Part shown: piece after piece, positions 2,152 to 59,261 of the stretch
Position numbering within the stretch: position 1 is the stretch's first letter
Layout of the letters: every line of letters begins with the position of its first letter
From: Trichoplax adhaerens
Taxonomy: Eukaryota > Animalia > Placozoa
DNA: 64,000 nt
Direction of reading: 5' to 3'
Assembly (NCBI RefSeq): GCF_000150275.1
Contig: NW_002060947.1
Span: 4,746,267 to 4,810,266, forward strand
Position numbers and translations under genes: made by a program
Notes under the pieces: model-generated
What the model was told of the DNA's origin: nothing
Databases searched by the model: none
The model's input: the letters and a program-made list of their open reading frames with translations, nothing else

Positions 2152-5100
2152 GATACAGTCTACTGAAATCAGTAGTTTAATTAGGGGGTCAAGAATAATC
2201 TTCTTACGATTCAAATCACTGCGAATGTAATTTACTTATGGTAGAATATCGCAGAAATGCTCCGTGATAGGACATATTGTAATCTGACAATTTTGTGTTA
2301 GTCATTCGATGTCTATGTTCGTAAATACTGTTGTCTTCATTAGGTAGCAGTAGATAAAATTAACTTTTGATTCATTAGCAGGTTTCAACGTTAATATTAC
2401 TAACTAGGATGTACAGTATGTGCTATTATAAAAGAGTATAAATGCGATATATCGTATATATAGAGAGTTCTTTAGATTAGTGTTTAACGTAAGATACGAG
2501 ACGTCTAAGTTTTTTTGTAGTCTACTAGTATAGGAAAAGTGTTCCTGGAAGAGTAGATATTGCTCGCTGATACGTGGTTCAGGGAATCGACTTATTGATC
2601 GCTCATTACGTTATCTTGCTGCAAAGCTGTATTGTAACATTGATAAACTAAATATTGATGTTGCATGATGAAAATATTAGCTGTTGTTTTAATTTAACTT
2701 GAAAGGGTTACAGTTATTGTAAGGAATTTATTCATAGCTATTGTGTATTAAATATTAATTCTACTAGAATATCTTTAGTATATTTAGTTATAATTATTTA
2801 ATTGTAATCGGTTTAGTATTAATAGATTTACATGTGGAAAATTTAACCTAAATAACTTAATCTTTATTTTAATTTTCTATACCGTACATCTTGAGTAAGT
2901 CATAACTGATCAGATTCATCGTTATTCTGATAGTGTGTTTAATCAGTTTCGAAGTTAATATAATTTTCGTTAGTTTGCAATCAAGATTGTTTCAGATATT
3001 TGTGTTTAAATTTTAACAAGTACCGTAGTAAATTAGTTATGTGTTTCTTCTATATACTTATCTCATCTTTATCGACTGACATCAATATCTACGTAATATA
3101 ACTTTAAATGGTTTGAAACATTCTATGTTTAATTTCACTTGATAAATGGCCAGGCATAATAACATGGATTGTGGAAATAAGCTCGTAATGCACTCTATAG
3201 TATGTTATACTATTATTTTTGTTATTAATATTGAAAAGCGTTTTCACTTCTTTTAGTTATGGATACCATATGATAAACTAATTAATATTATTACTGTAAA
3301 ATATGAAAAGATTTGATTTTTCTGGCTTATCTATAATTTATTCGTCGTAATTTTCATAAAGGAGGTGTTATAGTATCGTTGATATATATAAGCATGAAAT
3401 TTTAGCTAGATTATATTACTGTGAAATAAGCCTTATATAACTAATAAGAGGCAGCTCCCAAAATTTCTTTAGCCAGAAATATCGTCGTAAGCCTGTTATA
3501 GCATAGTAACATAGGCGTTAAGCGCAGTACATACCGTATTACATATATTTTGCAATGAAACAATTGATCGATCAAATATGATGACTTATCATATTCGATA
3601 TCAAGTAATTTAGAATTATACAAAGAAATATATGTGACTGATAATGGTACTACATAATTCTTGTACTTTATAGCAATCAAGCTATGCAAATAAAAGTTTA
3701 GCTTTCTCTTTTGATTAGACAATTATAGCAATTCCTGACATGCCCTTCGTTCTGTGATATTTGAAATTCATTACTTTAGAGATTACTGTTATTAGACGAA
3801 ATATCTAGAACGTCTATCGAGGAGTAGATTTGTAGATTTAGATTTTTGTTATCTTGTCACAGAGCATGTTTCTAACGACTTGACATATTAATAAGCACAG
3901 CCAGTAAACAAAGTGCTATATACAGTACAGTAATATTTATGTGAAACAACTCTTGATAATTCCTCAGCCTTAGATTTTGACATGACTGGATACGCTGTAG
4001 TAATTCATACGAACTCTTATACAGTAGAATTGTGTGGTAAAATATTTAATAAGAGTTTAATAAAGTTGTATCAATTAGTACTATGATTTTGTAATATTAT
4101 TCAATAATTATAATTTATGACACTTGTGTAAAGAACGCATTCTTTCTTGTCTTAGTATATGACTAGATGATTATTGTCTCTTCATTAAAACTAAGCGTTA
4201 ATTACTCCAAAGCATTGTCACAAACTTCCGATTGGATATTTTGAGTCGCTGATAAGTACTGTACAAGTAGTATACAGCCGTAGGCAACATGGTGCAAGTA
4301 TAGAACTTCTACTACTTATTAGCTGTAGGTTTTGATATTACTAGATACATTCTACAGGTATGACGTTTAATTTTACGTTTTGCAGGTAATCTAAATTAAT
4401 TATAGTAAGTTCGGACCTATTTTAAATTACTTACAAAATTATAAATCGTAGCATAATTTACCGAGTTCTTTTTTAAGAGTTTGTAATTTCGCTTTTAATT
4501 AAGATTACGTCAATATAGGAAGATACTTTAAAAACCTACAGTGGTATTACTTCCTTAGTAACCAGTAGACGTATGAACTTAAAGAATATCGTCTCATTGT
4601 GCTGAAAGAAGCTCTAAACTATCGATAAGGCTCGGTCTGTTGTATGTCCAATATAATTAAAATAGCTATATCGAAAATAATTATTGTAATATCGAAATTA
4701 ACTTGAAACGCCTTGAAATAGGTCGTTATTAAAGGTAGTACTTTGTGTACGCGTATACTTGTACTTTTATGATTTGACAGTGTTGCTCAACAAGTGATAC
4801 CGTACTGTTCACAATGCGCGAATTACTTATTGATTGCTGAGAACTCGAGATTTCGGTCTTTAATTAGTGATATGATACTATAGTGTGTGAAGTACAGTAA
4901 AGCTTAATTAAGTGTATGGAAAATTATTACGCGTATGTGATAGAATTAGGCTTGAAATATCTGTGAATGGATTGTAATAAGTAGCATTTATGGAGTATAC
5001 TATACTTGCTTAGAATATATAATGCGAGTATATTTGAAACGAGTACATGAGCCGTAATTTGTTACACAATAGGTAATACTATTTTCTACATAAGATTAAT

Positions 5101-6808
5101 TGGTTGATAAATTAAGGTACTGTAATATTCGTATTCTGTTGAGCATTAGTATGGAGTAGCGAAAATTTCTATATTTCAGTATCGTAATAATTTTGATATT
5201 TTGTAGTGGATGTTAGAATAATTACTGTAATTATTAAGTGATATAAGCATATTCTATGGAAAGGTAAAACAATTATAATCAGGAATGGTATTTTAACTAT
5301 GGTAACACTTAGGATAGTGTTAATATTATTAATACGCCAATTGCTGTGTTGGTCAACTGATTTATTCGCTAATCAAGAAAAATATTCATATGTAGACGAT
5401 TGTTCACATTAAGATTAAATAAAGCTATGGCTACAGTAAAGTTGTATGCGTTGACGAAAATGTTATCTATCAAATAAAAACGTAGAGTCGTATCTAAATT
5501 ATTATCGTAGACATTAGCTTAAGAGGGTAATTCCAATTAATAGCAAGTCATAAGATAGAATTTAAGATTGACGTAGTATAAAGTACGGAATGGAGATACT
5601 TTATATTCTTGTATTATAGCCTCGGTCGTGCTAGGTCACATTAGAGTTGTATAGATAATGTTAATTTTTATAGTTTCCTATCTAGTGATATATTAATTGC
5701 TAGTGTAATATCGATGAGGAATTGTTTAGTACGACAACCAGCAGCAATAAATTTAGGCTGTTAAACTTTCTGGACAGCGAAAATGTTACATTAAATATAC
5801 CAATTCATGTAAATGACTCATTGACACGATTAACTTTGGATAAGATCTTGTTTCATGTTTAAACGATGAAATCTGTAGGAAAATAATACTACTAGTTTTA
5901 CCGGTTTACTTTGAATGTTATAGTGCTGTTTGTGACAGTTGTAGCCTGATTGATAAATATAAGTTTATGCGTAGATGGAATAAGTGTAGAAGATACAGTA
6001 GTCTATTAAAATAACTTTTGAAGTATATCGTACGAACGCTATGAGATTAAATGATATGATAAAGTCGGTAGATATCGTAGAGTAGAATTTGCAAAATTTA
6101 TTATTTAAGGTTAAATATATTATAGCTAGTAAGTATAAACATTGGCGTAACATAACCTACTTTTCAATTGTTTTAGTATTATCCGAAGCTCTGAGATGAA
6201 ATTTATAGTTAATGAGATTGATAGTGTATTGATAGAGTAAACTGCATGTAATCCGATGTTGGAGATATTGTATGATTTTCACTAGTCTAATATTTTACAA
6301 CATTAGCTTAGTAAGATACTTGTCGAAGTCTAGTAGCGACATTTATAATTTCAGATAATGTATACTTTATATTTAATCGCATTCGAAAGTAATATGAATA
6401 GTGATGTTGTTTAGTACTGTATAGGACTAAGAAATATTTTGTACTTTATTATTTACACGCCTGATAGAATATGAGAGAACGTCGTACAATCTCGTACAGT
6501 ATTAGCCAAAAGAGGTATTACAAATTTTGAATGATTTAATCGTCTTTAGTATGCTTTGCAATACTGATCTTTATTAGCATAAGGCAAGTAAATGCTAGAA
6601 AGCTGACATTGCTAATATAAATCAACGCATGAGAAATTGTATTGATACAAAAGATTTTAATTTGAATCAATTTTTGTAACGACTACTGGGTTAATTATCG
6701 GTATCGGAGATAAGATACCGAATAAAATCATCTACGATTCTACAATTATCACCATATTTCTTTACTAGCGATAATCCAACTCATGCGCTTTTTATGAAAT
6801 TGGTAAAT

Positions 6809-8197
6809 TTATTTCTGGATAAGTTGATTATAGTCAGCAGTTCCGGATAGATGCATCGATTCATCGATTTGATTGATGATATTAAAAATAAATATAGAAG
6901 AATTTATTTAGCTAAAGTATGTTAGACTACTAAATTAATGATTAGTTTAATTTATAGACATTAATTAAACTCAATCAGTTTTCTTAAATGTAACTGTTTG
7001 CGTATTACCGTACGATAATTATTTATATTTTAATATCGATAGCATAACTAACCTTTCCCTGTAGAATCATAGGCCCAAAGAGGACATACAACATAGGTTG
7101 AATAAAAATGCGAAATTGGCGAATATTAGTTTTAGAAGTATATATAGTATGTATATTACATGATGTAAAGTAAGTACGTTTTAATTTAACGTTTTAATTT
7201 TCATAAATCATACATTTATAGCTGTTAGATAACTTTCAGTTATAAAGTAAACTATGTACTACGAATTAATGAAGGAAATGCTTATTTTGTTTACTACAGA
7301 ACATACATATCGACGACGGTAGAAACGACGGCGGTAGAAACGACGACGGAAAAAGACGCGACGACGGATATAGCGACGACGGATATAGCGACGACGGCGA
7401 CTCCACTATGTAGAAAAATATTAATTGTTAAGTTTTGTTAATTTGTCGACATCAAACAATGAAGGAAGTAATTCTATAGCGCAGGCATTAAATCACTTAG
7501 TGTTTTCATGGGGGTATGTGTGATTAGTTCGTATTTGTATATAAGGAAGTTTTACTCATTTACAGACTATTCTATTTCATAGTTTAATAGTAAATTACTT
7601 ACCCAAGCAGCCTTCTGCTTATTGATTTTTAATCCACGGCACGAAGATAGGGTAAGAAGCAATAGCTTATAATTAGTACAAATATCAAACATTTTTACGC
7701 CATATTGTAAGCAGGTAAAAGATAATTAGAGTATGTCGATGAAGACTTTTGTGAGACATTGAGTATCTAATATACGGATCAGATCGAATCGTTACTAAGC
7801 TGGATCCGTAAGTAGGTTTGTTATTATGTACTATTTTCGTTATTGACTAACTTGGGTTAATTTTACTAAGTATAATGACGATATTTGTAAATAACTTGCC
7901 TTGGAAAGTTCAGCTTTCGTTTCGTCATCCTGAAATTACATTAATAAAATTATTATTCTCTTTATAATTGATTAATAAATTAGAGTTATAGTTTATTTTT
8001 AGTTAAGTCTTTATACAGCAGAGAGTTTAACTTACTACATCGCTTTCCATAAGAGCCTTTAGATCTTCTTCATCGACATTATCTAAATCGGCTTCTTTAC
8101 CGAAGATTTCATTTTCTTCAGGTTTTTCTTCTTCGGTTGCGAAAGCGACCGCCGCGAAGAATAATACAGTAGCGACCAAGATAAGCTTCGTGTTCAT
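6809..8197 (-). CDS. Secreted Arg/Trp-rich prepropeptide, copy P1 (104 aa; putative amidated cationic host-defence peptide precursor)
   Basis: Manual splicing of coding exons: 8197-8036 (MNTKLILVATVLFFAAVAFATEEEKPEENEIFGKEADLDNVDEEDLKALMESDV), 7929-7900 (DDETKAELSK, GC donor), 7614-7603 (KAAW), 7405-7307 (WSRRRRYIRRRYIRRRVFFRRRFYRRRFYRRRY), 7058-7053 (GK), 6814-6809 (K-stop). All junctions are phase 0 with AG acceptors and GT/GC donors, and are conserved in the paralogs. Confidence 0.85.
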
Positions 8198-8719
8198 GTT
8201 TCCTGATTAGACAGAAGCGTAATTAAACAACTAAGGTTAGAAATTTAATTAATAATGAAAAGTGATTGTAGCATAAATCAACTGTTGCACTCAGAGAACA
8301 TGACGGTTTTATGTTACGACAATAAAATACAGGAATAAACATATGTATCTATTTCTAAATTATATATCGTAACGTATTGGTGAAAATTAACTTGATATCG
8401 CAATGTAACGATAATTTAAGTCACTTTTATAAAATTTTGATTATCGTGTAGAATTTACGAAAGAAGTGATCGTGATTTCGTAATAGTAAAGTAAAAGCAT
8501 ATCTGTGTTAAGTAATTTTAAAATGTGTTTATTACTAATCTTGTCTTATTGATAAAACGAGGGAGCTATTATTTAGTATGAAAGCTTAACGAAATTTCAC
8601 ATTTTAATTTTAAAGATACGGATATACTCTGTATTACGGCACTGATATTATCTGATGACTATAAGAAACTGTAAAATTTTTCTTCCGTTATAATCTAAGC
8701 TGTATTTTAAATGACTTAC

Positions 8720-8781
8720 CAGTTGGATTAGCAATTACCAAGGGGAGAATGATCGGTTACCGAAAAAATCGGCTATTTATA
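8720..8781 (-). promoter_or_regulatory. Core promoter (TATAAATA + Inr-like TCATTC) and ~31-nt non-coding first exon of P1
   Basis: Minus strand: TATAAATA at 8781-8774, the A of TCATTC at 8750 (31 nt downstream), donor CTG|GTAAGT after 8720. Matching acceptor CAG|GAAAC-ATG at 8202. Confidence 0.7.
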
Positions 8782-16476: not shown

Positions 16477-17838
16477 TTATTTCTGGATAAGTTCATTATA
16501 GTCAGTGGTTCCGGATAGATGTATCGATTTGTTGATTTGATTGATGATATTAAAAACATTAAATATATAAAAATATGTTTAGTCAAAGTTAGCTAAATTA
16601 CTAAATTAACGATAAGTTCAATTATCGATATTAATTAAATTAAATAAATTAGCGTATTCTTAAATGTTACTATTCGTGTATTACTGTAAGGTATTTATTT
16701 ATATTTTAATATTGATAGCATGACTAACCTTTCCCTGTAGCATCATAGGTCCAAAGAGGACAAACGACATAGGTTGAATAAAAATACGAAATTGGCAAAG
16801 ATTAGTTTTAGAAGCATATACGATTATAGTATGTATATTACATGATGTGGAGTAAGTACATTTTAATTTTCATAAATTTTTTTTATTTTTATAATAGTTA
16901 CATAACTGTCAATTGTTAAGTGAACTATGTGTTATGAATTAATGAAGGAATTGCTTATTTTGTTGACTATAGAGCTTACGCTTCGGCGACGACGGTAAAC
17001 ATGACGGCGACGGCGACTCCACTATGTATAAAATATTAATTGTTAAATCTTGTTAGTGTTATCGACATCAAAAAATAAAGAAAGCAATTCTGTAGCACTA
17101 GCGTTGAATCAATTAGTGTTTTTATGAGGGTATGTGTAATTAATTTGTATTTGCATATGCGGACGTTTTACCCATTTATATAGACTATTCCATTTCACAG
17201 TTTTATAATAAATTACTTACCCACCAAGCCTTCTGCTCAGTAATTTTTAAGCCATGGTACGAAGATCGTGTAAGAAGCAATAGCTTATAATTAGTACAGA
17301 AATCGAATGTTTTCAAACCGTATTATAAGTAGGTAAATAATTAGAGATATCGATGAAGATATTTCTGAGATATCGAGTATCTAATTTACGGATCAGATCA
17401 AAGACTAGAAAAGCGAAATTTTTAACCTAATCGTTACCAAGCAGGATCCGTAAGAAGGTTTGCTAATATGTGCAATTTTAGTCATTGACTAGTTTGGGTC
17501 ATTTTTACTAAATGTGATAATGGTATTTACAAATAACTTGCCTTAACGACTTCGGCTTTCACTTCGTCATCCTGAAATCGCATTAGTAAAATTGTTATTT
17601 TCTCTTTATAATTGATTGATAAATTTAGAGTTATGGTTTATTTTGTTTAAGTCTTTATACAGTGGAGACGTTAACTTACGATATCGCTTTCCAGAAGAGC
17701 CTTTAGATCTTCTTCATCTACATCACGCATTTCGGTTTCTTTAGCCGAGACTTCATTTTGTTCAGGAGCTTCTTCTTCGATTGCGAAAGCAACCGCGAAG
17801 AATAATAAGGTAGCAACTAAGATAAGCTTCGTGTTCAT
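16477..17838 (-). CDS. Secreted Arg/Trp-rich prepropeptide, copy P2 (84 aa)
   Basis: Exons 17838-17680 (MNTKLILVATLLFFAVAFAIEEEAPEQNEVSAKETEMRDVDEEDLKALLESDI), 17571-17542 (DDEVKAEVVK), 17232-17221 (KAWW), 17021-16980 (WSRRRRHVYRRRRS), 16734-16729 (GK), 16482-16477 (K-stop). Open frame, splice sites intact. Confidence 0.85.
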
Positions 17839-18347: not shown

Positions 18348-18409
18348 CAGCTGGTTTCACAATCGCCAAGAGGAGAATGGTCGGTTACCGAAAAAGCCAG
18401 CTATTTATA
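18348..18409 (-). promoter_or_regulatory. Core promoter and non-coding first exon of P2
   Basis: TATAAATA at 18409-18402, the A of CCATTC at 18378, donor GTAAGT after 18348. Same spacing as P1. Confidence 0.7.
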
Positions 18410-24214: not shown

Positions 24215-25602
24215 TTATTTCTGGATAAGTTCATTATAGCCAGTGGTTCCGGATAGATGTATCGATTTGTTGATTTGATTGATAATATTAAAAAAATTAA
24301 ATATATAAAAATATGTTTAGTCAAAGTTAGCTAAATTACTAAATTAACGATAAGTTCAATTATCGATATTAATTAAATTAAATAAATTAGCGTATTCTTA
24401 AATGTTACTATTCGTGTATTACTGTAAGGTATTTATTTATATTTTAATATTGATAGCATGACTAACCTTTCCCTGTAGCATCATAGGTCCAAAGAGGACA
24501 AACGACATAAGTTGAATAAAAATACGAAATTGGCAAAGATTAGTTTTAGAAGTATATATGTATATTACATGATGTGGAATAGGTACATTTTAATTTTCAT
24601 AAATCATACTTTTATATCAATTAGATGACTGCCAATTGTTAAGTGAACTATGTGCTACGAGTTAATGAAGGAAATATTTATTTTATTTTCTGCAGAACTT
24701 ACATATCGACGACGACGGATATAGTAGCGACGACGCCGGATATAATAGCGACGACGACGGATATAATAGCGACGACGACGTCTCCACTATGTATAAAATA
24801 TTAATTGTTAGTTTTCTTAGTGCTATCGATATCAAGCAATAAAGGAAATAATCCTGTAACACTTGCGTTGAATCACTTAGCACTTTCATAAGGGTATGCG
24901 TAATTAATTTGTATTTGTATATGTGCACGTTTTACCCATTTATATAGACTATTCCACTTCACAGTTTTATAATAAATTACTTACCCACCAAGCCTTTTGC
25001 TCCTTAATTTTTAATCCATGTTACGAAGATAGTGCAAGAAGCAATAATTTATTATTAGTACAGAAATCGAATGTTTTTACACCGTCTTATAAGTAGGTAA
25101 ATAATTAGAGACGTCGATGAAGATGTTTATAAGATAACGAGTATCTAATTTATGGATCAGATCAAAGACTAGAAAAACGAAATTTTTAACTTAATCGTTA
25201 CCAAGCAGGGTCCGTAAGAAGGTATGTAGTTATTAGTTTTTTTCATGATTGACTTACTTGGGTCATTTTTAGTAAATGTGATAATGGTATTTACAAATAA
25301 CTTGCCTTAACGACTTTAGTTTTCATTTCATCATCCTAAAATCGTATTAATAAAATTGTTATTTTCTCTTTATAATTGATTGATAAATTTAGAGTTATGG
25401 TTTATTTTGTTTAAGTCTTTATACAGTGGAGACTTTAACTTACGATATCGCTTTCCAGAAGAGCCTTTAGATCTTCTTCATCTACATCACGCATTTCGGT
25501 TTCTTTATCCGAGACTTCATTTTGTTCAGGTGCTTCTTCTTCGATTGCGAAAGCAACCGCGAAGAATAATAAGGTAGCAACTAAGATAAGCTTCGTGTTC
25601 AT
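24215..25602 (-). CDS. Secreted Arg/Trp-rich prepropeptide, copy P3 (~98 aa; acceptor of the 12-nt microexon mutated)
   Basis: Exons 25602-25444, 25335-25306 (DDEMKTKVVK), 24996-24985 (KAWW; acceptor CAG->CAA at 24997), 24786-24703 (WRRRRRYYIRRRRYYIRRRRYYIRRRRY), 24472-24467 (GK), 24220-24215 (K-stop). Confidence 0.75.
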
Positions 25603-26378: not shown

Positions 26379-26439
26379 CAGTTGGTTTAGCAATCACCAA
26401 GGAAAGAATGATCGGTTACCGAAAAGTTGGCTATTTATA
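26379..26439 (-). promoter_or_regulatory. Core promoter and non-coding first exon of P3
   Basis: TATAAATA at 26439-26432, the A of TCATTC at 26409, donor GTAAGT after 26379. Confidence 0.7.
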
Positions 26440-34617: not shown

Positions 34618-35977
34618 TTATTTCTGGATAAGTTCATTATAGCCAGTGGTTCCGGATAGATGTATCGATTCGTTGATTTGATAGATGATATTAAAAACAT
34701 TAAATATATAAAAATATATTTGGCCAAGGTTAGCTAAATTACTAAATTAACGATGAGTTCAATTATCGATATTAATTGAATTAAATTAATTAGCGTATTC
34801 TTAAAGATGATATTTAAGTATTGCCGTAAGGTAATTATCTACATTAGTATCGATAGTATAACTAACCTTTCCCTATAGTATCATAGGCCCAAATAGGACA
34901 AACGACATAAGTTGAATAAAAATACGAAATTGGCAAAGATTAGTTTTAGAAGCATTTACGATTATAGTATGTATATTACATGATGTGGAGTAAGTACATT
35001 TTAATTTTCATAAATTTTATTTTTATGATAGTTAGATAACCGTCAATGGCTAAGCAAATTATGTGCTACGAATTAATGAAGGGAATACTTATTTTGTTTA
35101 CTATAGAACTTACACTTCGACGACGGCGTATATAGCGGCGACGACGGTAAACAACACGGCGACGGCGACTCCACTGTGTAAAAATTATTAATTGTTAAAT
35201 CTTGTTAGTGTTATTGATATCAAAAAATAAAGGAAGCAGTTCTGTAACACTAGCGTTGAATCAATTAGTGTTTTCATGAATTAATTTGTATTTGCATATG
35301 CGGACGTTTTACCCATTTATATAGACTACTCCATTTCACAGTTTATAATAAATTACTTACCCACCAAGCCTTCTGCTCATTGATTTTTAATCCATGGTAA
35401 GAAGATAGTGTAACAAGCAATAGTTTATAATTAGTACAGAAATCGAATGTTTTTATATCGTATTATAAGTAGGTAAATAATTAGAGATGTCGATGAAGAT
35501 ATTTCTAAGACAACTAGTATCTATTATACAGATCAGATCAAAGACTAGAAAAACGAAATTTTAACCTAATCGTTACCAAGCAGGATCCGTAAGAAGGTAT
35601 GTAGTTATTAGTTATTTTTGTGATTGACTTACTCAGGTCATTTTTAGTAAATGTGACAATGGTATTTACAAATAACTTGCCTTAACGACTTCGGCTTTCA
35701 CTTCGTCATCCTGAAATCGTATTAATAAAACTGCTATTTTTTCTTTATAATTGATTGATAAATTTAGAGTTATGATTTATTTTGTTTAAGTCTTTATACA
35801 GTTGAGACTTTAACTTACGATATCGCTTTCCAGAAGAGCCTTTAGATCTTCTTCATCTACATCACGCATTTCGGTTTCTTTAGCCGAGACTTCATTTTGT
35901 TCAGGAGCTTCTTCTTCGATTGCGAAAGCAACCGCGAAGAATAATAAGGTAGCAACTAACATAAGCTTCGTGTTCAT
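34618..35977 (-). CDS. Secreted Arg/Trp-rich prepropeptide, copy P4 (90 aa)
   Basis: Exons 35977-35819 (MNTKLMLVATLLFFAVAFAIEEEAPEQ...ALLESDI), 35710-35681 (DDEVKAEVVK), 35372-35361 (KAWW), 35173-35114 (WSRRRRVVYRRRRYIRRRRS), 34872-34867 (GK), 34623-34618 (K-stop). Confidence 0.85.
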
Positions 35978-41527: not shown

Positions 41528-44171
41528 TTACTTGCTGCGTTTACGGCGACGTGAAACTCCATAACATTCAGCAATATGAGAGATATTCTCTGTTTGTTAA
41601 GAAAACATTATAATCTGTTAGTGTCTGGGTTACAATAGGCGAAGAGGAAAGCCTTAATCAACCTAGCGTCTTTTCACGAATTTCTTTTACATAAGAACTC
41701 TCGTTAGTATCCGAGCGATTAGATGGAGAAAGAAATAATTCAAAGTCCGGTCCATATCTATCAAAGAACTAAACAAGACTAGCGTTGGCAATACGAACGA
41801 TTGACATATATTTTAGGCAATTAGCTTGTTAACTTATGTAACCTGATGTTCAGGGATTTGTGTATCCAATTTTTGCTCTAAAATTATAGAAGTTAAATAG
41901 CACCAGCATTTTGCAGTATTTGTAAAGTTATATCCACCTTAACAAAGCAAGGTAAAATTAGTTTTCCTTTACTCTAACAAATTGAGATTAGCGTTTCAAA
42001 TAAGTTTAATCTGACAACATACAAATCTTACCTCCACCCAAACATAATGTAGGTAGATTATAGGATAGAATATCAGAAAGGCATTTGCCTAAGCTTAAGG
42101 AAGTTAAATTAAACGATCGCATCGGGTCTTCTACTAATCCATCAGCACCAAATTGGCATACAACCGCATTCGGTTGAAAAGCTTGCATAACATTCGTAAA
42201 TACCCTTAGTAAAGCAACAAATTACATACTCAGCTCCTGATGTCTAGCTAAGTTACAACCATAATTTCAAGACAGAGTCAATAGTAATTGTGACTAAACT
42301 CACTCATGAAATAAATCTGTGTATTTCTGGTCAGTGATACCATCTTTTAATGGAATATTTAGTGTGTAGTATTGTCCTTTACCTTTGCCAATGGTAGAAA
42401 TTGAACCAGTTCCTATGCATGAACAAGAAAAAATAAAAGAATTAAAAATGTATTCTACAAATTGTATTTTCTACTTTACTCAAGTATGAGGATATTTTCA
42501 GTTGTATTACCTGGAAAGAAACCTGGAGCGTATTTATGAAATGATAAGGTGAAAACTTTATCAGTCATTAAGAATGCATCTTCCACACCTAGCCATACAA
42601 ATTTAAATGAAACATTATTACACATGGCCTGAAAAATAAAGTGATTAAATCTTTTGCAATGTGCATACGTGGATAAGCATTGTATCTTACCATCGCCATG
42701 GTGCAAATCTAGATCGATGTATAAAATCTTGTCGAAAACAGTTTTCAAGTGCAAAACTCCTAGTACAACATCGTTACAATAACAAAATCCAGAAGCCATA
42801 TCCCTATGACATAAATCAAAGCTGTCAACGTCTTCAGGTAACGCTAGTAAATTTGCAATTTTTGTTAATTTCGCAAGCAATTAAGGTTAAGTAGTTCGAA
42901 GAAATAGGTGATAAATTACTATAAGATTAGCTTAAACTTACGCTACCTTTTAGCATGGTGCCACCCACCAAACCAGTTAATAGCAATACTACAACAGCGA
43001 CTAGTTAGCAATCTAGCTGCTGTAATAGTTCCACCAGTTACAAAGGAAGCGTAACTGAATACATCGGGAAAGAGGGGACAGTCATAACCTGCAACAATAT
43101 TCATCGAAAAAACATGAGTCTGTTACAGTAAATGCGAGTTGATGTTATTGTGAGCTCAATCTTAAATTTTTTAAATAGTTTGTCACGCATCACTTAATAT
43201 ATTAATTATCTTCTTACCGAGTCCATATTCTGTCATTTCACTTGTGATCTCATCTTCCATGTCAAAGTTATGACATGCCTGTAGAGTATTTACAAAATCA
43301 CTAGAATGGAAGGCACATATTTCTTCAATACTAGCTGGCTTTGGCCTGGCTACTCTAAATGAAAATTGATTACATTTTACAGCGGTAGTGACTAGCCTAA
43401 CCATAGAGCATGTAATTGGTACAGATGTACTTTAAGTTGTAAAATTGAATTTTAGCATGATTTGGTAACTATTCTTACTTCATTTTATCCACAAGATTGT
43501 AAGCCTGGATTAAGTGATGGACAAGTCTAGCCTATCAAAATTTCGATATCAGTATGGAGTCAGTAACAGGAAAGGAGAAAAGTCGTAATTATGCTTATCT
43601 TATCATTTAGTGCAAACATATTTTTGTAAACTCAGGATTAAAATTTTTAAAAAGTTACGCATGACATCATCTTCTTAGAATTAAATTGTTAACTTCATCA
43701 TCTGTGACAGATTAGAGGAATTATCAAAGCTACTTTGATTACTCGTATAGGTATGGTGTACTAATCTCACTCTGCCTTAATTATTGTCCGAACTGATTAC
43801 CATTCGATATCTTCCTATATTTACAATCATAACTCACTGGCTAGTAAGAAATCATGTAGCACATGATATGTGAACTACTGTTACTATATTTCATTAAAGG
43901 TATTTGGTACAGTTAATTGCAGCACGCTAGATAGTTAAAACAAACTAAGAGCGCGTTTTAGGATTTTACTATCACAGATACAATCTAAGAGACAGCAGGA
44001 CGGTCATCCAGAAAGACTGTAGAATGTTTGATGTGTTTAGCTATGTGAATGATTAATTTCAAACTTATCCTATCTTAGTACCCTATCTTCCAGACGAGGC
44101 ATTTTGCAACATAAGTCCACGTACTCTTCACTATATACATATCCAACTTGCTTTTCGTCACTGGTAGACAT
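41528..44171 (-). CDS. HDAC8: Histone deacetylase 8 (class I HDAC), ~11 coding exons
   Basis: First exon [30 protein letters not shown], then [13 protein letters not shown]. Motifs [53 protein letters not shown] and LGGG|GYN. Last exon ends ...[10 protein letters not shown]-stop. The YxYSxEY and DLDLHHGDG motifs favour HDAC8 over HDAC1/2/3. Confidence 0.92.
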
Positions 44172-47100: not shown

Positions 47101-49203
47101 TATGTACTACCGTAGGCTGTAATACTTGCGTAGTTTAATACGATTAGTTGCTCCTGCCCGGCAAAATATGGTAGCGCGTGGAAGCGTGATAATATTACTA
47201 CCATTACTAAATAAGTCGTGCGCTAGGATTTATAAGCGTATGCAACGAGTAGATCGGGAGTTCTTCTTGTTAATAGTTTGTTATAAATACAGTTACGGTT
47301 GGTTTAATAGTTATAAAGCTTAATTTGGGCTTTAAATCCATTTAGTTTGATTTATTATGGACCCTTAAGAATTGACTTCATTACAGTGAAATATTGTATG
47401 TTGTAGTTCAATTTGCATTCTTTAATGCAATTAGCTTTGATAGATTGTTTCATTCCTCTTTTATTTTGACGTTATAATTCACTTAAACAGTCATTGCGTA
47501 TCAGCAAACGCTATTGTAAGGAATTACGCAGATATACTCTGTCCTTGATTGTACCCTTTCACATAAACTATTTATCCTGTTACTGATGTCTATTTCAGTA
47601 CATAATGAAAGTGATGATGAAGAAAAGAATTAGTATTTGATAAATGCTTGGATTCAGTTTCTCGAGTTGGTTCTAACTTTGCTTTAATAAATATATATAT
47701 ATACACATATTTATACATATGTAAATAGTAACAAGACTTACTTCTTAATCACATCGATCGTTATTAATTTGCAATTAAAATGACATATAACTGAAATGTT
47801 GTGCTTTGATAGATTTTATTGCTGCCCGTGATACGTGTACTGTACTATCTACGAGATTTTTTTTTGTATCAAATTACTCCATGACACTCGTAGTATTACT
47901 ATGCTGCTCAAACATTTAATGTTGAGAAAAAAATATAATTTGAAATAAAATCTAGTGTATTTTAGGATATTTGATTAAAAGTTATAATCGAAAATATAGA
48001 AAGATTTCCTCCCATGAATTTAGTGCTGTACGCGCCCATATCATTTAATCAACTGCTCGGTCAATTATGTATAATTCTAGGTTGTTGCAAAAGTCATAGA
48101 TGCTTTTCCGATTTGAAGTCTCAGATTTTATAATGAGCTAGATTTCTGATTACAAATCGATAAGTAAATAGAAGAAGTATCCGTATCAGGTAGAAATGCT
48201 TAATGATCTTGGTTAAATGAAGATTGATGTAACTTCAATATCAAGGCTGCAGTAGTATCTCTCGATGGGTGGATGATATCTGTTTTTAATAATGTCTAAT
48301 TTACATAAGCGTAGGTTCGGTGTAAATTAAATCGATGTGAACGTATTGATTCACTGTCGATTGGTAGCGTTTCTGTCAAGGGCTGTACAAGCCTTTCAAT
48401 GATTAGTTAATTAATAATTATTATTGCAGATGTGTGCATCCTGTTATTGAATTTGAATGAACAATGGCTAAATAGCTGAAATTAGATATTTAGTACTTTA
48501 TTCGAAAGTAATTTAAAAAGTTATAAACGAACTAAAGAGAGAAATTTGCCCAGTGATTTATTCTTGAATCAATTGATAACTAATTTACTATTTCTTAAAT
48601 TGTTCAAATTATTTGCGGTAAGGATTATCGCTTTAGATGTCTAAAAATTCATATAAATAATTTCACTTATAAATAGTAATGATAAGCTTTCACAAGCATT
48701 TTATGAGAAATTGCAAATAAACACTAATAGTATCCATATCTATTTAATTGTTTTAAATATTAATTACAAATTACTTTTATCAAATTTTCCAGATGTACGA
48801 TTAGTCAATACTTGCAATATCATTTCAGTTACAATAGATGTCATATCTAGTTAGTTAAATATTAATACTAGAATATGATTGTTGAAGGCGAAAATGGATA
48901 CTAATTCTTTATTTTTGTATCAGTAACACTAATAATTACTTATTCTTTTCTAATGCGCTGCAGGCATTCGAATTGTGCGTGGTGGAGATGATTTATAAAA
49001 CAGCGAATTAGTTAGAAAGTTATTAATACTTCCTTTAATATTTACGGATTCTATAGTATAAGACTCATTTAGCGGTTTAAAGAGAGAAAGATAGCTCTAA
49101 TGGTTGTACAACTGTGAATTATATTAGTGGTAACAATTCGCTGAATGAGGCAGTAGAAAAACCCTTCAATCAGATAAAATTACTACGATCAGTGTTTCTA
49201 ATC

Positions 49204-50298
49204 ATGGCCAATGCAACGAATGCTATAATTGAACCTCAAGTTGTGGTGACTTATGTTACACTAAGTTTTCATATATTAAGTGGGTTCTTAAATTTTTTCA
49301 TCTTTTATGTCGTTCATAAAAGCGCGAAACTACATTCATCTTCATATGCATTTCTAGCCAATGCCTGTATTTCTGATTTTTTGCTATCTTTCGTTTTTGT
49401 TCTGTTCTTTATTGTGCAAAAAACTGCAACTTTAACTTTTCTAGATACTGATATTCTTTGTAAGCTATTTAACTATATTTCTATATTGTCTTGCGTTGTA
49501 TCTACCTATACATTTACTGCCATTGCAATCGACCGTCATCGATCAATTCACAGCTGTTTGAATAATCAATTTAAAGTTATGAGTGATAAAGAAATATTTG
49601 TTACAATTACAGGTATTTGGATGTCTGCTATTATTTTATCTACTCCACTCTTGCTCTTGTCCGGAACTTACTCTTATGATATTCATTTTTGCGATGTTTT
49701 ACCATCTGAGCCTTTAAACGCGATTTTTTTTACCTTGATGTTTATTATCTTATATTTTTTACCATTACTTGTAATGATAGTAATGTATGTACGCATCTAT
49801 GCAATGAAGAATTATATTCAGCCGTTTCACAGAGAGCATCAAAATCAGCCAATATCTGATCAACAGTCGCTATTATTTATTCGCATGTTGGTGATAATTT
49901 CCAGTGGATTTATGACGCTAATATTGCCAATCTTTTCGTTTTTACTTTTGACAGCATATAGTGGACTGTCGTTGGAGAAATTGCGTCGAGAAAACCTACA
50001 ATTGTATTATCTTGCATGGGTGTTTTATTCTATGGCATTTAGTGTAACATTTGTTAATCCATTGGTATATGTAGCTAGTGATAGAAATATACGTTTTGTG
50101 GTTAAAATTTGCATATTGCAATTGTTGAGATTACCTGTTAGAGAAGAGTTTCTCAGAGAGGCAAAACTAAATCAGACTCTTTCACGCATAAGAACGCGAC
50201 GCGTATCAGCTTTTAATTTGGCCACTCTTACTCCTAATGCGTCTTGGCAAAATTTAAGAAGAAGTGACGAACGTACTCAAACGTCAATAGTAATGTAA
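49204..50298 (+). CDS. Intronless rhodopsin-class (class A) GPCR, orphan, ~364 aa
   Basis: Seven hydrophobic segments, TM2 'NACISD', TM3 Cys and AIAIDRH, TM4 W...P, ECL2 Cys, TM5 YFLPL, TM7 NPLVY. The first ATG at 49204 (MANAT, N-glycosylation sequon) is preferred over the GTG start in the ORF track. Confidence 0.92.
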   Translation: MANATNAIIEPQVVVTYVTLSFHILSGFLNFFIFYVVHKSAKLHSSSYAFLANACISDFLLSFVFVLFFIVQKTATLTFLDTDILCKLFNYISILSCVVSTYTFTAIAIDRHRSIHSCLNNQFKVMSDKEIFVTITGIWMSAIILSTPLLLLSGTYSYDIHFCDVLPSEPLNAIFFTLMFIILYFLPLLVMIVMYVRIYAMKNYIQPFHREHQNQPISDQQSLLFIRMLVIISSGFMTLILPIFSFLLLTAYSGLSLEKLRRENLQLYYLAWVFYSMAFSVTFVNPLVYVASDRNIRFVVKICILQLLRLPVREEFLREAKLNQTLSRIRTRRVSAFNLATLTPNASWQNLRRSDERTQTSIVM

Positions 50299-53610: not shown

Positions 53611-54657
53611 ATGGCTACAATGAAAAAGGTCTTGATTACAGGTGCCTCCGGTTTATTAGGGCGAGCCATTAAGAGAGAATTTGATAATGATGCTACATGG
53701 AAAGTTTTAGGGCTTGCTTACAGCAGGGCCGGCGGTGATTTACGAAGAGTCGATTTATCTGATGTTAACGCAGTTAAAGAGGTGGTCCGTGAATTCCAAC
53801 CTGATGTAATTGTTCATGCTGCTGCAGAACGACGACCTGATATTGTTGATAAAAAAACTGACGTTGCTCGACAATTGAATGTCGATGTCAGTCGAAATTT
53901 AGCTTTGATTGCTAAAACTTTCAATTGCTTTATCCTCTACGTAAGTACAGATTATGTTTTTGATGGTTGTAACCCTCCGTATCAGCCTGCGGACCAACCA
54001 GCCCCGCTCAATACTTACGGAATGTTGAAGTGGCAAGGTGAAAAAGCAGTTTTAGAAACGTATCCCAAACGGAGTGGGATATTGCGCTTACCGATACTTT
54101 ATGGTGAAGTAGAATACCTTGAAGAAAGTGCAGTTACAGGTTAATGCAGTTACATAGAGTTAACTTTACCGGTACAATAACTACCGTATTCCGTAATACC
54201 ATATCGTTTATTGTTTGAGCATTGCTCGATTTCGATTTTATGCTGAACACTTCCTGTACTTACTCTTTTCTTATTATCAGTTTTATTGAAAGCAATTCAA
54301 AATGGAAATAAACCGGGTGAAATGTCGGATTACGAGAAACGTTACCCAACTTATGTAGGAGATGTAGCTGTAGTTATCCGACAAATTTCGGATAAAACTT
54401 TACAGGATGAAAATTTTTATGGAATTTGGCATTGGAGTGGCTTGGAAGAATTAACTAAATATCAGATGGCACTTAAAATTGCTAAGGCCTTTAATATAGA
54501 TTATAAACATTTAGTAGCAGTCAACAAACCATCTCCTGGAGCTAAGCGACCTTATAATAGTCATCTCGATATTTCTACGTTGACTCAGCTTAATTTTGGG
54601 CAACAAACTAGTTTCCAAGACGGTATTATGATTTCGTTGTCGAAATTTATATCATAA
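53611..54657 (+). CDS. MAT2B: Methionine adenosyltransferase 2 beta subunit / RmlD-like extended SDR, paralog 1 (301 aa, 2 exons)
   Basis: Exons 53611-54139 and 54281-54657 (phase 1). Motifs ITGASGLLGR, HAAAERRPD, STDYVFDG, YGMLK, LRLPILYG, RYPT, WHWSG.E.LTKY and GAKRP.N. Confidence 0.92.
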
Positions 54658-55929: not shown

Positions 55930-57174
55930 TTAACTAACGTTTACAAAATTACGGAGACATTCCTGTATGCCTACCCGAAAAGGCGTATGTCTACCGAAGT
56001 TTAGTTTCATTAAATCAGAACAATCTAACTGACTGTTATTAGATCTTTTCGCTCCCGTTGGAGGCTCGCTGGCTGGCTTGATATGACTGAAATCTAAATT
56101 AAATACTTCAGCCATAATTTTGGTCATCTGATACTTTGTTAGAGCTTCAGATCCACTCCAATGCCATATACCACGAAAATCATTTTCTGATAGCGCCTTC
56201 TCACAGATTTGTCTTATAACGATCGCAATATCATCGACGAGGGTTGGATAACGCATACCATAGTCAGTGACACTTTTTGATTTAGTATTATTGAGAACTG
56301 CCTGAAAAAGAGCTGATGCCATAGAAGAAAAGTAAGGAATTAAGTAGCTTGAGGATAAAGTAAATTTACCTTAACAAAGAACGTAACGTAACTACATGCC
56401 ATACAGTAAAGTAAATTTTTGATGTGACCACACTACTCAACGCTAGGTACTACAGTAGTATGCACACTCTGCAACTGAAGGAAAATATAATGACGTACTG
56501 AAGTCATGTAACAGGCCTGTTTCGCTTTTTAAAGTATAATCAAGCTATAAAACTCATTTACATTCTAGTATTGAAGTCATCTCATATGTAATTATCCACA
56601 TGTCGGTCACTGTATTCTCTACAACATGCATAAACTTACCCGTGCACGAGCATTCAGCTAAGTTTTCAACTTGTCCATAAAGATACGGCACTCGCAGCAC
56701 TCCGCTACTTTTAGGCAGGGTTTGTAGAGTAGCTTTTTCACCTTCAAACTTGAAAATGCAGTAACTGTTTGAGGGATTTGGTACATCACTAGGCTTGTAA
56801 GGGGGACTCTTTCCATCAAAGACACCATTGGTACTAATATAGAGTAAGAAACAGTTAAATTCTTTGGCAATAGAGGCTAAATTTTGACTGACAACAACAT
56901 TAAGTTGCCTAGAAGCCTCTAATTGCTGTTCTACCACATCAGGACGTCGTTCTGCAGCAGAATGAATAATAACCGTGGGGCGAAATTCACTAACTAGAGC
57001 TCTAACAGCACCTACGTCTTTTAGATCGACCTTGCGCAGGTTTCCTTTAGCTCGAGTGAATGCAAGACCCACGCATTCCCAGCTGCCATCCACTTCAAAC
57101 TCCTTTAGGATAGCTCGGCCCAATAATCCCGAAGCACCCGTAATAAGTACTTTCTTTCTTTGATCATCTCTCAT
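55930..57174 (-). CDS. MAT2B: MAT2B / RmlD-like extended SDR, paralog 2 (305 aa, 2 exons)
   Basis: Exons 57174-56640 and 56312-55930, with the intron at the same position and phase as paralog 1. Motifs ITGASGLLGR, HSAAERRPD, STNGVFDG, YCIFK, RYPT and WHWSG. Confidence 0.9.
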
Positions 57175-57320
57175 CTTGATGACCACTTTAACTTATTGCT
57201 GTTAATTTGAACTATTCGATTTTTATTGCTAGTAAGTCGGGTAACTTTTCTTCTGGTCTGCTACAACCTACAAATCAATTTCTGCAAAATGAGGCTCGTT
57301 TGGCTGAAAGAATTGGCACT

Positions 57321-58289: not shown

Positions 58290-59261
58290 ATGGCGGATCT
58301 AATTGAGAAGGCAGACGGAGAAATTAGTGATCGATCGCAGGCTGAAGATGTTGATAGTAAAGCGATGGAGTTAAAAAATGGCGACTCAAGTTTAGAGAAG
58401 TTATTTGATTTAATGCTAGATATCAATGGTCGTTTGGAGCATCAAGAGGAAGAATTGAGAAGGTTGCGTGATGTAGATGAACTTTCCGAACCCGAGAGTA
58501 GGCGATCGATTGCTAGTCGAGGTTCTAAAGGGCCCAAAATACATACAGTGACTAGGGCCGCACCTGTATCAAGACAAAATATGTCGTTTACTAATCAAAA
58601 AGCCAAAGAAATAGAGAAGGAAAATCACCGTTTGCTTGCCGAAATACAGCGAAAAAAACAAAAACCCAAAGTTAAAAAACCGCCAAATCGTAAAGCAACT
58701 ACAACGACGAGTACTTCAGCCACACAACCGGCTAGAGTAACGGCCTCATTAGTCAATAGGCGAAGAGATGCTCAGAGAATACAATTTGAAAACTTGGTAA
58801 TTTATAATCTTTACCTTAATCTACTAAAGTTATATATGTTATAGGGAATAAATTGCTATCACCTTGATAGCTGTTGCGTATTTTAGTTCATACGGCAGTT
58901 TATGATAACCATATCAGTAAATGAACTTTCAGTATCATTTTAGATATTCTTATTATACTGTGTTATACTGTATTAATTGATTGACGTATTTATTATCGAT
59001 TTACTAAAATTTTAGTTATTGTTGAAGAGACTACAGAAGGCTAAACCTACAGAAACTATTCGAAAATCAACTAATGTTACTAGATCGAGACCTACCAGTG
59101 CAAATAGGAATACAAACAGGCAAAAGAAAAGAAGTAGTAGCGCAGATGCCAGGCCCTCAAGGGAGGGGGCCAATGCCGATAGCAACAGCAGATCATCATC
59201 AGCTAAGAGTAGTAAACCTACTAAACCTAAAAGCAAACCAGTCTGGGAAGCTGGATGGTAA
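58290..59261 (+). CDS. CFAP97: Cilia- and flagella-associated protein 97-like (KIAA1430 domain), ~250 aa, 2 exons
   Basis: Exons 58290-58796 and 59016-59261 (phase 0). NMSFTN..AKEIEKENHRLL and SLVNRRRDAQRIQFENL|LLLKRLQKAKPT match the family pattern. Confidence 0.8.

Follow-up and report, generated by a model that had tools for sequence, protein, structure and literature searches.

Four tandem genes for Arg-rich, putatively amidated secreted peptides in Trichoplax adhaerens carry coding exons of 12 and 6 nucleotides

Hydra arminins (Augustin et al. 2009, as cited in PMC12013895) are composed of a signal peptide, an acidic propiece, and a cationic C-terminal peptide. In Trichoplax, Mayorova et al. 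2025 (PMC12013895) describe arminin-like putative AMP1-4 (Ta 55945, 56030, 60631, and 64402), which are among the genes most highly expressed in peripheral ventral epithelial cells and have precursors of about 150 to 250 amino acids. The genes analyzed here occur in the same organism and share the signal, acidic, basic, and C-terminal-Gly logic of AMP1-4, but they are different genes, and a query with their first coding exon found no further family member in the genome or the databases. With the arminins they have in common a C-terminal Gly followed by basic residues for amidation, taxonomic restriction, multiple copies, and apparently high expression, whereas their product has a far higher Arg content (up to 19 of 33 residues), is built of repeats, and is capped with Trp, and their processing signals are placed on separate 12-nt and 6-nt exons. 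Besides, the predicted product resembles peptides of the indolicidin, tritrpticin, and tachyplesin type in composition (Arg with Trp, Tyr, or Phe), small size, and C-terminal amide; this likeness is compositional only, since the sequences are unrelated and the peptides described here contain no Cys or Pro scaffold.

Two further systems are comparable with respect to exon size. The schistosome micro-exon genes (MEGs), reportedly described by DeMarco and coworkers in 2010, encode secreted products and combine a signal-peptide exon with symmetric internal microexons of 6 to 36 nt, so that skips keep the reading frame. The Trichoplax genes are MEG-like in having symmetric internal exons of 30, 12, and 6 nt (all within 36 nt), conventional end exons, and a secreted product, but only 48 of the 315 coding nucleotides of the first paralog, P1, belong to exons no longer than 30 nt, so the genes are not microexon dominated, and their variation comes from repeat changes in one larger exon and not from exon choice. 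Bilaterian neuronal microexons (3 to 27 nt) are regulated, flanked by long introns, and dependent on the bilaterian-specific factor SRRM4/eMIC. The exons reported here are likewise very short and in frame, although they lie between introns of 106 to 285 nt and are apparently constitutive.

The window, i.e., the whole stretch of 64,000 nucleotides that was analyzed (contig NW_002060947.1 of T. adhaerens), is AT-rich (about 30% GC) and contains four tandem minus-strand genes, P1 to P4, for small secreted Arg-rich peptides. All four have one layout: a 5'UTR exon (E0), an exon for the signal peptide and acidic propiece (E1), a 30-nt exon (E2), a 12-nt exon (E3), a variable Arg-rich exon (E4), the exon GGAAAG (E5), and a terminal exon beginning AAATAA (E6). 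From ATG to stop, P2 occupies 16477 to 17838 on the minus strand (17838-17680, 17571-17542, 17232-17221, 17021-16980, 16734-16729, and 16482-16477), P3 (TRIADDRAFT_63964) 24215 to 25602 on the minus strand, and P4, with the same layout and an E4 of 60 nt, 34618 to 35977 on the minus strand; their orthologs in Trichoplax sp. H2 are L007, L006, and L008, respectively. P2, P3, and P4 are 77 to 81% identical to P1, in exons and introns alike, and a GC donor follows the 30-nt exon in every paralog. A search of the whole genome (105.6 Mb, 1,414 contigs) with E1 gave exactly four matches, all within the window; E1 of P1 matches XP_002112943.1 (TRIADDRAFT_63962) of T. adhaerens, and E1 of P2 is 100% identical to Trichoplax sp. 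H2 proteins. The best explanation is that the four-gene array is Trichoplax specific and encodes precursors of about 85 to 105 residues, each consisting of a signal peptide, an acidic propiece, an Ala/Trp cap, an Arg/Tyr/Phe/Trp-rich peptide, and Gly-Lys-Lys.

Within 6000 to 38700 of the window, the entire unit of 8 to 10 kb around each peptide gene, and not the gene alone, is duplicated, and the intergenic blocks between the duplicated units show 67 to 92% identity. The neighboring open frames include a histone deacetylase exon (42476 to 42880, minus strand), a single-exon rhodopsin-type GPCR (49114 to 50298, plus strand), RmlD_sub_bind/epimerase exons in divergent orientation (53611 to 54144, plus strand, and 56554 to 57186, minus strand), and a Hemingway/CFAP97 exon (58290 to 58844, plus strand).

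We determined the exon structure of P1, which lies entirely on the minus strand. A TATA-like box, TATAAATAG (8773 to 8781, minus strand), precedes the 5'UTR exon by about 30 nt and is, by its position, a putative promoter element. The noncoding exon E0 (8720 to 8750, minus strand; 31 nt, 5' end approximate) ends in the donor CAACTG/gtaagt. Loose ends of RNA contigs at 8203/8197 match 8725 to 8747 within this exon with one mismatch, and counterparts of E0 are found at 18353 to 18375 (P2) and 26384 to 26406 (P3). Although the 5' loose ends had suggested a trans-spliced leader, this was rejected, since they correspond to a 5'UTR exon encoded in the genome some 520 nt upstream, which indicates ordinary cis-splicing; with E0 upstream of E1, P1 therefore has seven exons. 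E1 (8036 to 8202, minus strand) contains 5 nt of UTR, the ATG at 8197, and 162 coding nucleotides for a signal peptide of about 20 amino acids and the acidic propiece. It begins with MNTK and a 16-residue hydrophobic run ending in AFA, which we judged by eye to be an N-terminal signal peptide; its acceptor cag/GAAAC is used in RNA contigs, and its donor is /gtaagt. E2 (7900 to 7929, minus strand; 30 nt) encodes DDETKAELSK and ends in AAG before the GC donor AAG/GCAAGT. E3 (7603 to 7614, minus strand) is a 12-nt microexon, AAGGCTGCTTGG (KAAW), flanked by cag/ and /gtaagt. E4 (7307 to 7405, minus strand) is the variable Arg/aromatic-rich exon, with 99 nt, 33 codons, 19 Arg, and a charge of +19. 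E5 (7053 to 7058, minus strand) is the 6-nt microexon GGAAAG (Gly-Lys), flanked by cag/ and /gttagt. E6 (6605 to 6814, minus strand; acceptor atccag/AAATAA, 3' end approximate) encodes Lys-stop followed by about 200 nt of 3'UTR, and exonic RNA contigs extend to about 6605. The introns of these genes are short (106 to 285 nt). The sole long frame of the seven-exon mRNA runs from the ATG through E4 to the GKK-stop.

Since introns are about as conserved as exons in these young duplicates, conservation cannot decide whether the small exons are real, and RNA is needed; conservation as proof of the exons was thus set aside. Logan RNA contigs of four runs (X1, X4, X12, and X14) were aligned to the P1 region (6600 to 8400), and the expected junction strings were rebuilt from the window and compared with them. 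An X14 contig running from 6816 to 7306, with "TTC" between, is identical letter for letter to the predicted E6/E5/E4 string, with the E6 joint at 6814/6816, and the same string occurs in loose ends of X12 and X4 contigs, i.e., in three runs from two studies; a low-depth X4 variant has one letter changed and still encodes Gly-Lys. In X4, five contig classes span 7405/6 to 7900/3, and each has a 12-letter insert between E4 and E2, which is exactly E3 in three classes and one letter off in the other two; each class with the exact E3 has one or two letters altered in the last E2 codon. The RNA evidence for the 12-nt exon comes from this one run. As the X4 joint ends at 7900, the GC donor, and hence a GC-AG intron, is used. 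The E1-E2 joint (7928/9 to 8035/6, intron 8035 to 7930) was found in X4, X12, and X14, whereas X1 yielded genome-collinear contigs only, without joints. Exonic contigs are far deeper in word depth than intronic ones in X4, X12, and X14, although depth is only a rough measure, and loose ends in the P1-mapped contigs also show E1-E2 junctions of the P2/P4 type and of the P3 type.

It is conceivable that the microexons are products of contig assembly errors or alignment slop and that the larger exons are contiguous in the true mRNA. The evidence indeed consists of de Bruijn contigs rather than raw reads, and the aligner returned the microexon letters as "letters between" and not as aligned exons. 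Nevertheless, the inserts are genomic 6-mers and 12-mers with canonical splice flanks, in the expected order and at the expected distance; they recur in several runs and studies; and the E3 letters are present in both "expressed protein" models of the JGI as well. Leaving the inserts out would not close the frame, yet the origin of their letters would then be unexplained. We therefore regard such an artifact as having a close to negligible chance. The spliced form is present in RNA contigs, so the microexons go beyond chance, and E2 (30 nt), E3 (12 nt), E5 (6 nt), and the last exon with Lys-stop are genuine and spliced into the mRNA. This bears out an earlier note on this DNA, made from the letters alone, which had proposed the 12-nt and 6-nt exons, now seen spliced in P1 contigs, and had read E3 as AAGGCTGCTTGG in P1 and as AAGGCTTGGTGG in the paralogs, which is the sequence present in P2, P3, and P4. 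It had also placed every coding intron in phase 0; indeed, all coding exon lengths in the four copies are multiples of 3, and thus all introns are phase 0. The GC donor after E2, the noncoding exon E0, and the AA before E3 in P3 come in addition to what the note had listed.

The same note had suggested that regulated skipping could switch peptide maturation: without the 6-nt exon the peptide would not be amidated, and without the 12-nt exon KK and most of the Trp cap would be lost. The exons are symmetric, so that any skip keeps the frame, as schistosome micro-exon genes do when skipping exons in just this way, and the E3 acceptors lie in tandem AG contexts (aag or gag, then cag) that could permit acceptor shifts of 3 nt. 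However, no joint skipping either microexon was present among the contigs of the four runs at P1, every E4-E6 and E2-E4 joint reported there includes the microexon letters, and X4 assembled even single-letter junction variants, yet no skipped form. Besides, neither the microexons nor their splice sites vary among four paralogs and two species, as expected if the exons are constitutive. Since contigs drop rare forms and thus do not exclude rare isoforms, the switch is unsupported rather than refuted, and we consider it very unlikely. We infer constitutive inclusion from the lack of skipping contigs and from the short introns: introns of 106 to 285 nt would be recognized singly by the spliceosome (intron definition), in which case the microexons would be spliced constitutively and no dedicated microexon machinery would be needed. 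In a quite unlikely reading, E3 acceptor choice or inclusion of the 6-nt exon might be tuned between paralogs or conditions, P3 having already shifted its acceptor.

The amidation signal is split between Gly-Lys on the GGAAAG exon and Lys-stop on the AAATAA exon, as had been predicted, and is invariant in all four paralogs and all four H2 orthologs; the C-terminal Gly with basic residues (GGA AAG/AAA TAA) is present in the mRNA contigs too. The genome encodes P_proprotein domains and Cu2_monooxygen domains, the latter being a Pfam family that is not PAM specific. The motif with its splice sites was found only in these four genes in a genome search for the Gly-Lys microexon module; an extra motif match on contig C1309 was unrelated, and no recurring module of this kind was thus obtained. 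Separately, we observed a tandem cluster of about 9 to 10 Cu2_monooxygen (PF01082) genes within about 105 kb (G000:C1411:2806000-2910400), which may be an expanded PHM/DBH-like monooxygenase family.

The Lys-Lys site that was proposed to be built across the E2-E3 junction holds for P2, P4, and the reference P1 and fails for P3 and for one allele of P1. The E3 acceptor of P3 is AA and not AG (gagcaa/AAGGCT) in both H1 (window 24985 to 25010, minus strand) and H2 (L006, about 3598 to 3618). With the AGs located 6 nt upstream, 3 nt upstream, and 3 nt downstream, the exon would measure 18, 15, and 9 nt, respectively, in phase each time but without KK, so that KK is absent from P3 with any usable acceptor. 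In P1, a T-to-G change at window position 7902 converts AAG to CAG on the minus strand (Lys to Gln) in the last codon of E2. CAG is found in all covering contigs of X1, X12, and X14, X4 has both forms, and the H2 model TrispH2_012005 reads ELSQ, the Gln form. Junction-built Lys-Lys is thus not a conserved feature of the family, and a conserved KK or KR at the N terminus of the product, by which a dibasic-site prohormone would be recognized, is absent.

The earlier note had expected this layout to defeat standard gene prediction. In fact, all seven public protein models (two from H1 and five from H2) go wrong after E2, and the Arg-rich peptide is missing from each of them. In four H2 models at three loci (TrispH2_005856/012040, 012131, and 011655), the frame continues past the GC donor into intron sequence, where 005856, 012040, and 012131 stop (…ASYL-stop) and 011655 goes on through the intron to reach 103 residues; 012005 likewise reads through the GC donor and is then joined to the 3'UTR in another frame. 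The H1 model 63962 (XP_002112943.1) takes E3 and E4 in the +1 frame, which yields an RRLL stretch from the E3 letters and a GVAVVAIS stretch, and adds a spurious last exon. The other H1 model, 63964, lacks E4 and reads the 3'UTR, and it has the E3 letters in frame in the 18-nt version (EQKAWW). The GC donor is an additional cause of model failure beside the microexon layout. The 3'UTR contains an open frame (…FIKSAW.GLSL.KKYGDNYR…) at 6700 to 6808 on the minus strand of the window, with equivalents in P2, P3, and P4, which two public models treat as coding; in the P1 reference it is broken by a TGA and does not share the frame of the stop supported by RNA.

We compared the four H2 loci (L006 to L009) with the paralogs of the window. 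All four orthologs keep the 30/12/variable/6/AAATAA layout and the GC donor. E4 is made of tandem units of 15 to 18 nt, measures 99, 42, 84, and 60 nt in P1, P2, P3, and P4, respectively, and is the most divergent segment between paralogs, with 42 to 49% identity versus 73 to 88% in introns. Between H1 and H2, P1 is 98% identical, and the differences, one of them a 3-nt indel, are again most densely clustered in E4. Strain indels were also seen in intron 4 (window 7176 to 7256), where X1 has a 13-nt deletion and X12 and X14 have 8 nt in place of 68 nt.

With regard to homology, the only matches of a phmmer search with E1 among 1.84 billion representatives were placozoan or placozoan-like, exon-by-exon queries of Pfam and the ESM Atlas gave nothing usable, and a scan of JGI metagenomes gave no deeper homolog; all these searches were made exon by exon, so that homologs recognizable only from the full precursor could be missed. 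No similarity to Hydra arminins was detectable by the same exon-by-exon approach (E1 phmmer, Atlas, and Pfam). Since these searches showed no homology to arminins or to any other family, the analogy in function is drawn from composition and architecture. An E1 homolog of 49% identity, with an identical exon end and gtaaga after it, was found in a 964-bp ENA metagenome contig (L005, 620 to 778), which probably derives from a divergent placozoan. In the corresponding database protein, an intronic TGA is read as Trp, and the contig was unusable as a deeper test of the layout, as it ends about 185 nt past E1. In the literature, neither the gene numbers nor short peptide motifs of this family were found. 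The basic peptide is concealed in the public models, which probably explains why Ta 63962 and Ta 63964 are absent from the text and one supplement of Mayorova et al. 2025 (PMC12013895).

The architecture of the precursors is that of the arminins, i.e., a signal peptide, an acidic propiece followed by a basic C-terminal peptide, and an amidation Gly. The net charge of the propiece (the remainder of E1 plus E2) is −10 to −14 versus +8 to +19 for E4; the propiece part of E1 in P1 has a charge of −12, and across the copies the E1 remainder contributes −11 or −12 and E2 −2 (0 in P3). Judging from this arrangement, the signal peptide would be removed, and the acidic propiece, which would neutralize the cationic peptide within the precursor, would then be cleaved away close to the E2/E3 boundary. 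At the C terminus, the Lys residues would be trimmed and the Gly converted into an amide. The secreted cationic peptide may then act on the membranes of microbes or prey, like Hydra arminins and Arg/Trp-rich peptides.

One difficulty is that the RRR and RRRR runs of E4 could be cut by convertases, so that the long peptide may not survive. As the main rival reading, E4 could accordingly be taken as a multicopy propeptide, in which convertases cut at each RRR or RRRR run to release tiny YI, YYI, VFF, and FY peptides, which would serve as signals or otherwise, and the Arg residues are spacers. The exon does consist of a tandem unit of three or four Arg plus two or three aromatic or aliphatic residues, its repeat number varies as in neuropeptide precursors, and convertases with P_proprotein domains are encoded in the genome. 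In that case, however, the only residue left to be amidated would be one Tyr or Ser, which makes little sense, and di- and tripeptides are unusual as signals; the units differ among paralogs, unlike the conserved copies of neuropeptides, and the conserved Ala-Trp-Trp cap and the charge-balancing acidic propiece suit a long cationic product. We thus consider such a propeptide unlikely. Taken as a whole, the locus likely encodes constitutively spliced, arminin-like precursors of cationic amidated peptides that form an orphan placozoan family. The family is apparently strongly expressed, as far as RNA contig depth, a rough measure, can tell. A role in host defense or prey lysis is our best guess, with about an even chance of being correct.

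The family is unreported, misannotated, and orphan, and its processing signals are on unusually small exons. RNA-backed coding exons of 6 and 12 nt and a GC-AG intron occur in an early-branching animal without the bilaterian microexon machinery, and a secreted cationic peptide family of four genes is invisible in all public Trichoplax protein sets. Peptide predictions and lists of single-cell markers derived from these sets therefore miss the actual product. The phase-0 introns would set the fast-evolving, repeat-built E4 between invariant cap and amidation exons. It is a quite unlikely but more far-reaching interpretation that these peptides are a new class of placozoan effectors, very Arg rich, Trp capped, and amidated, that serve as a major defense or prey-lysing agent, and that the microexon layout is not incidental but lets the middle exon expand and contract between invariant mini-exons. 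The corrected gene models make it testable which cells express the peptides, whether they are amidated, and whether they kill bacteria or lyse algae.
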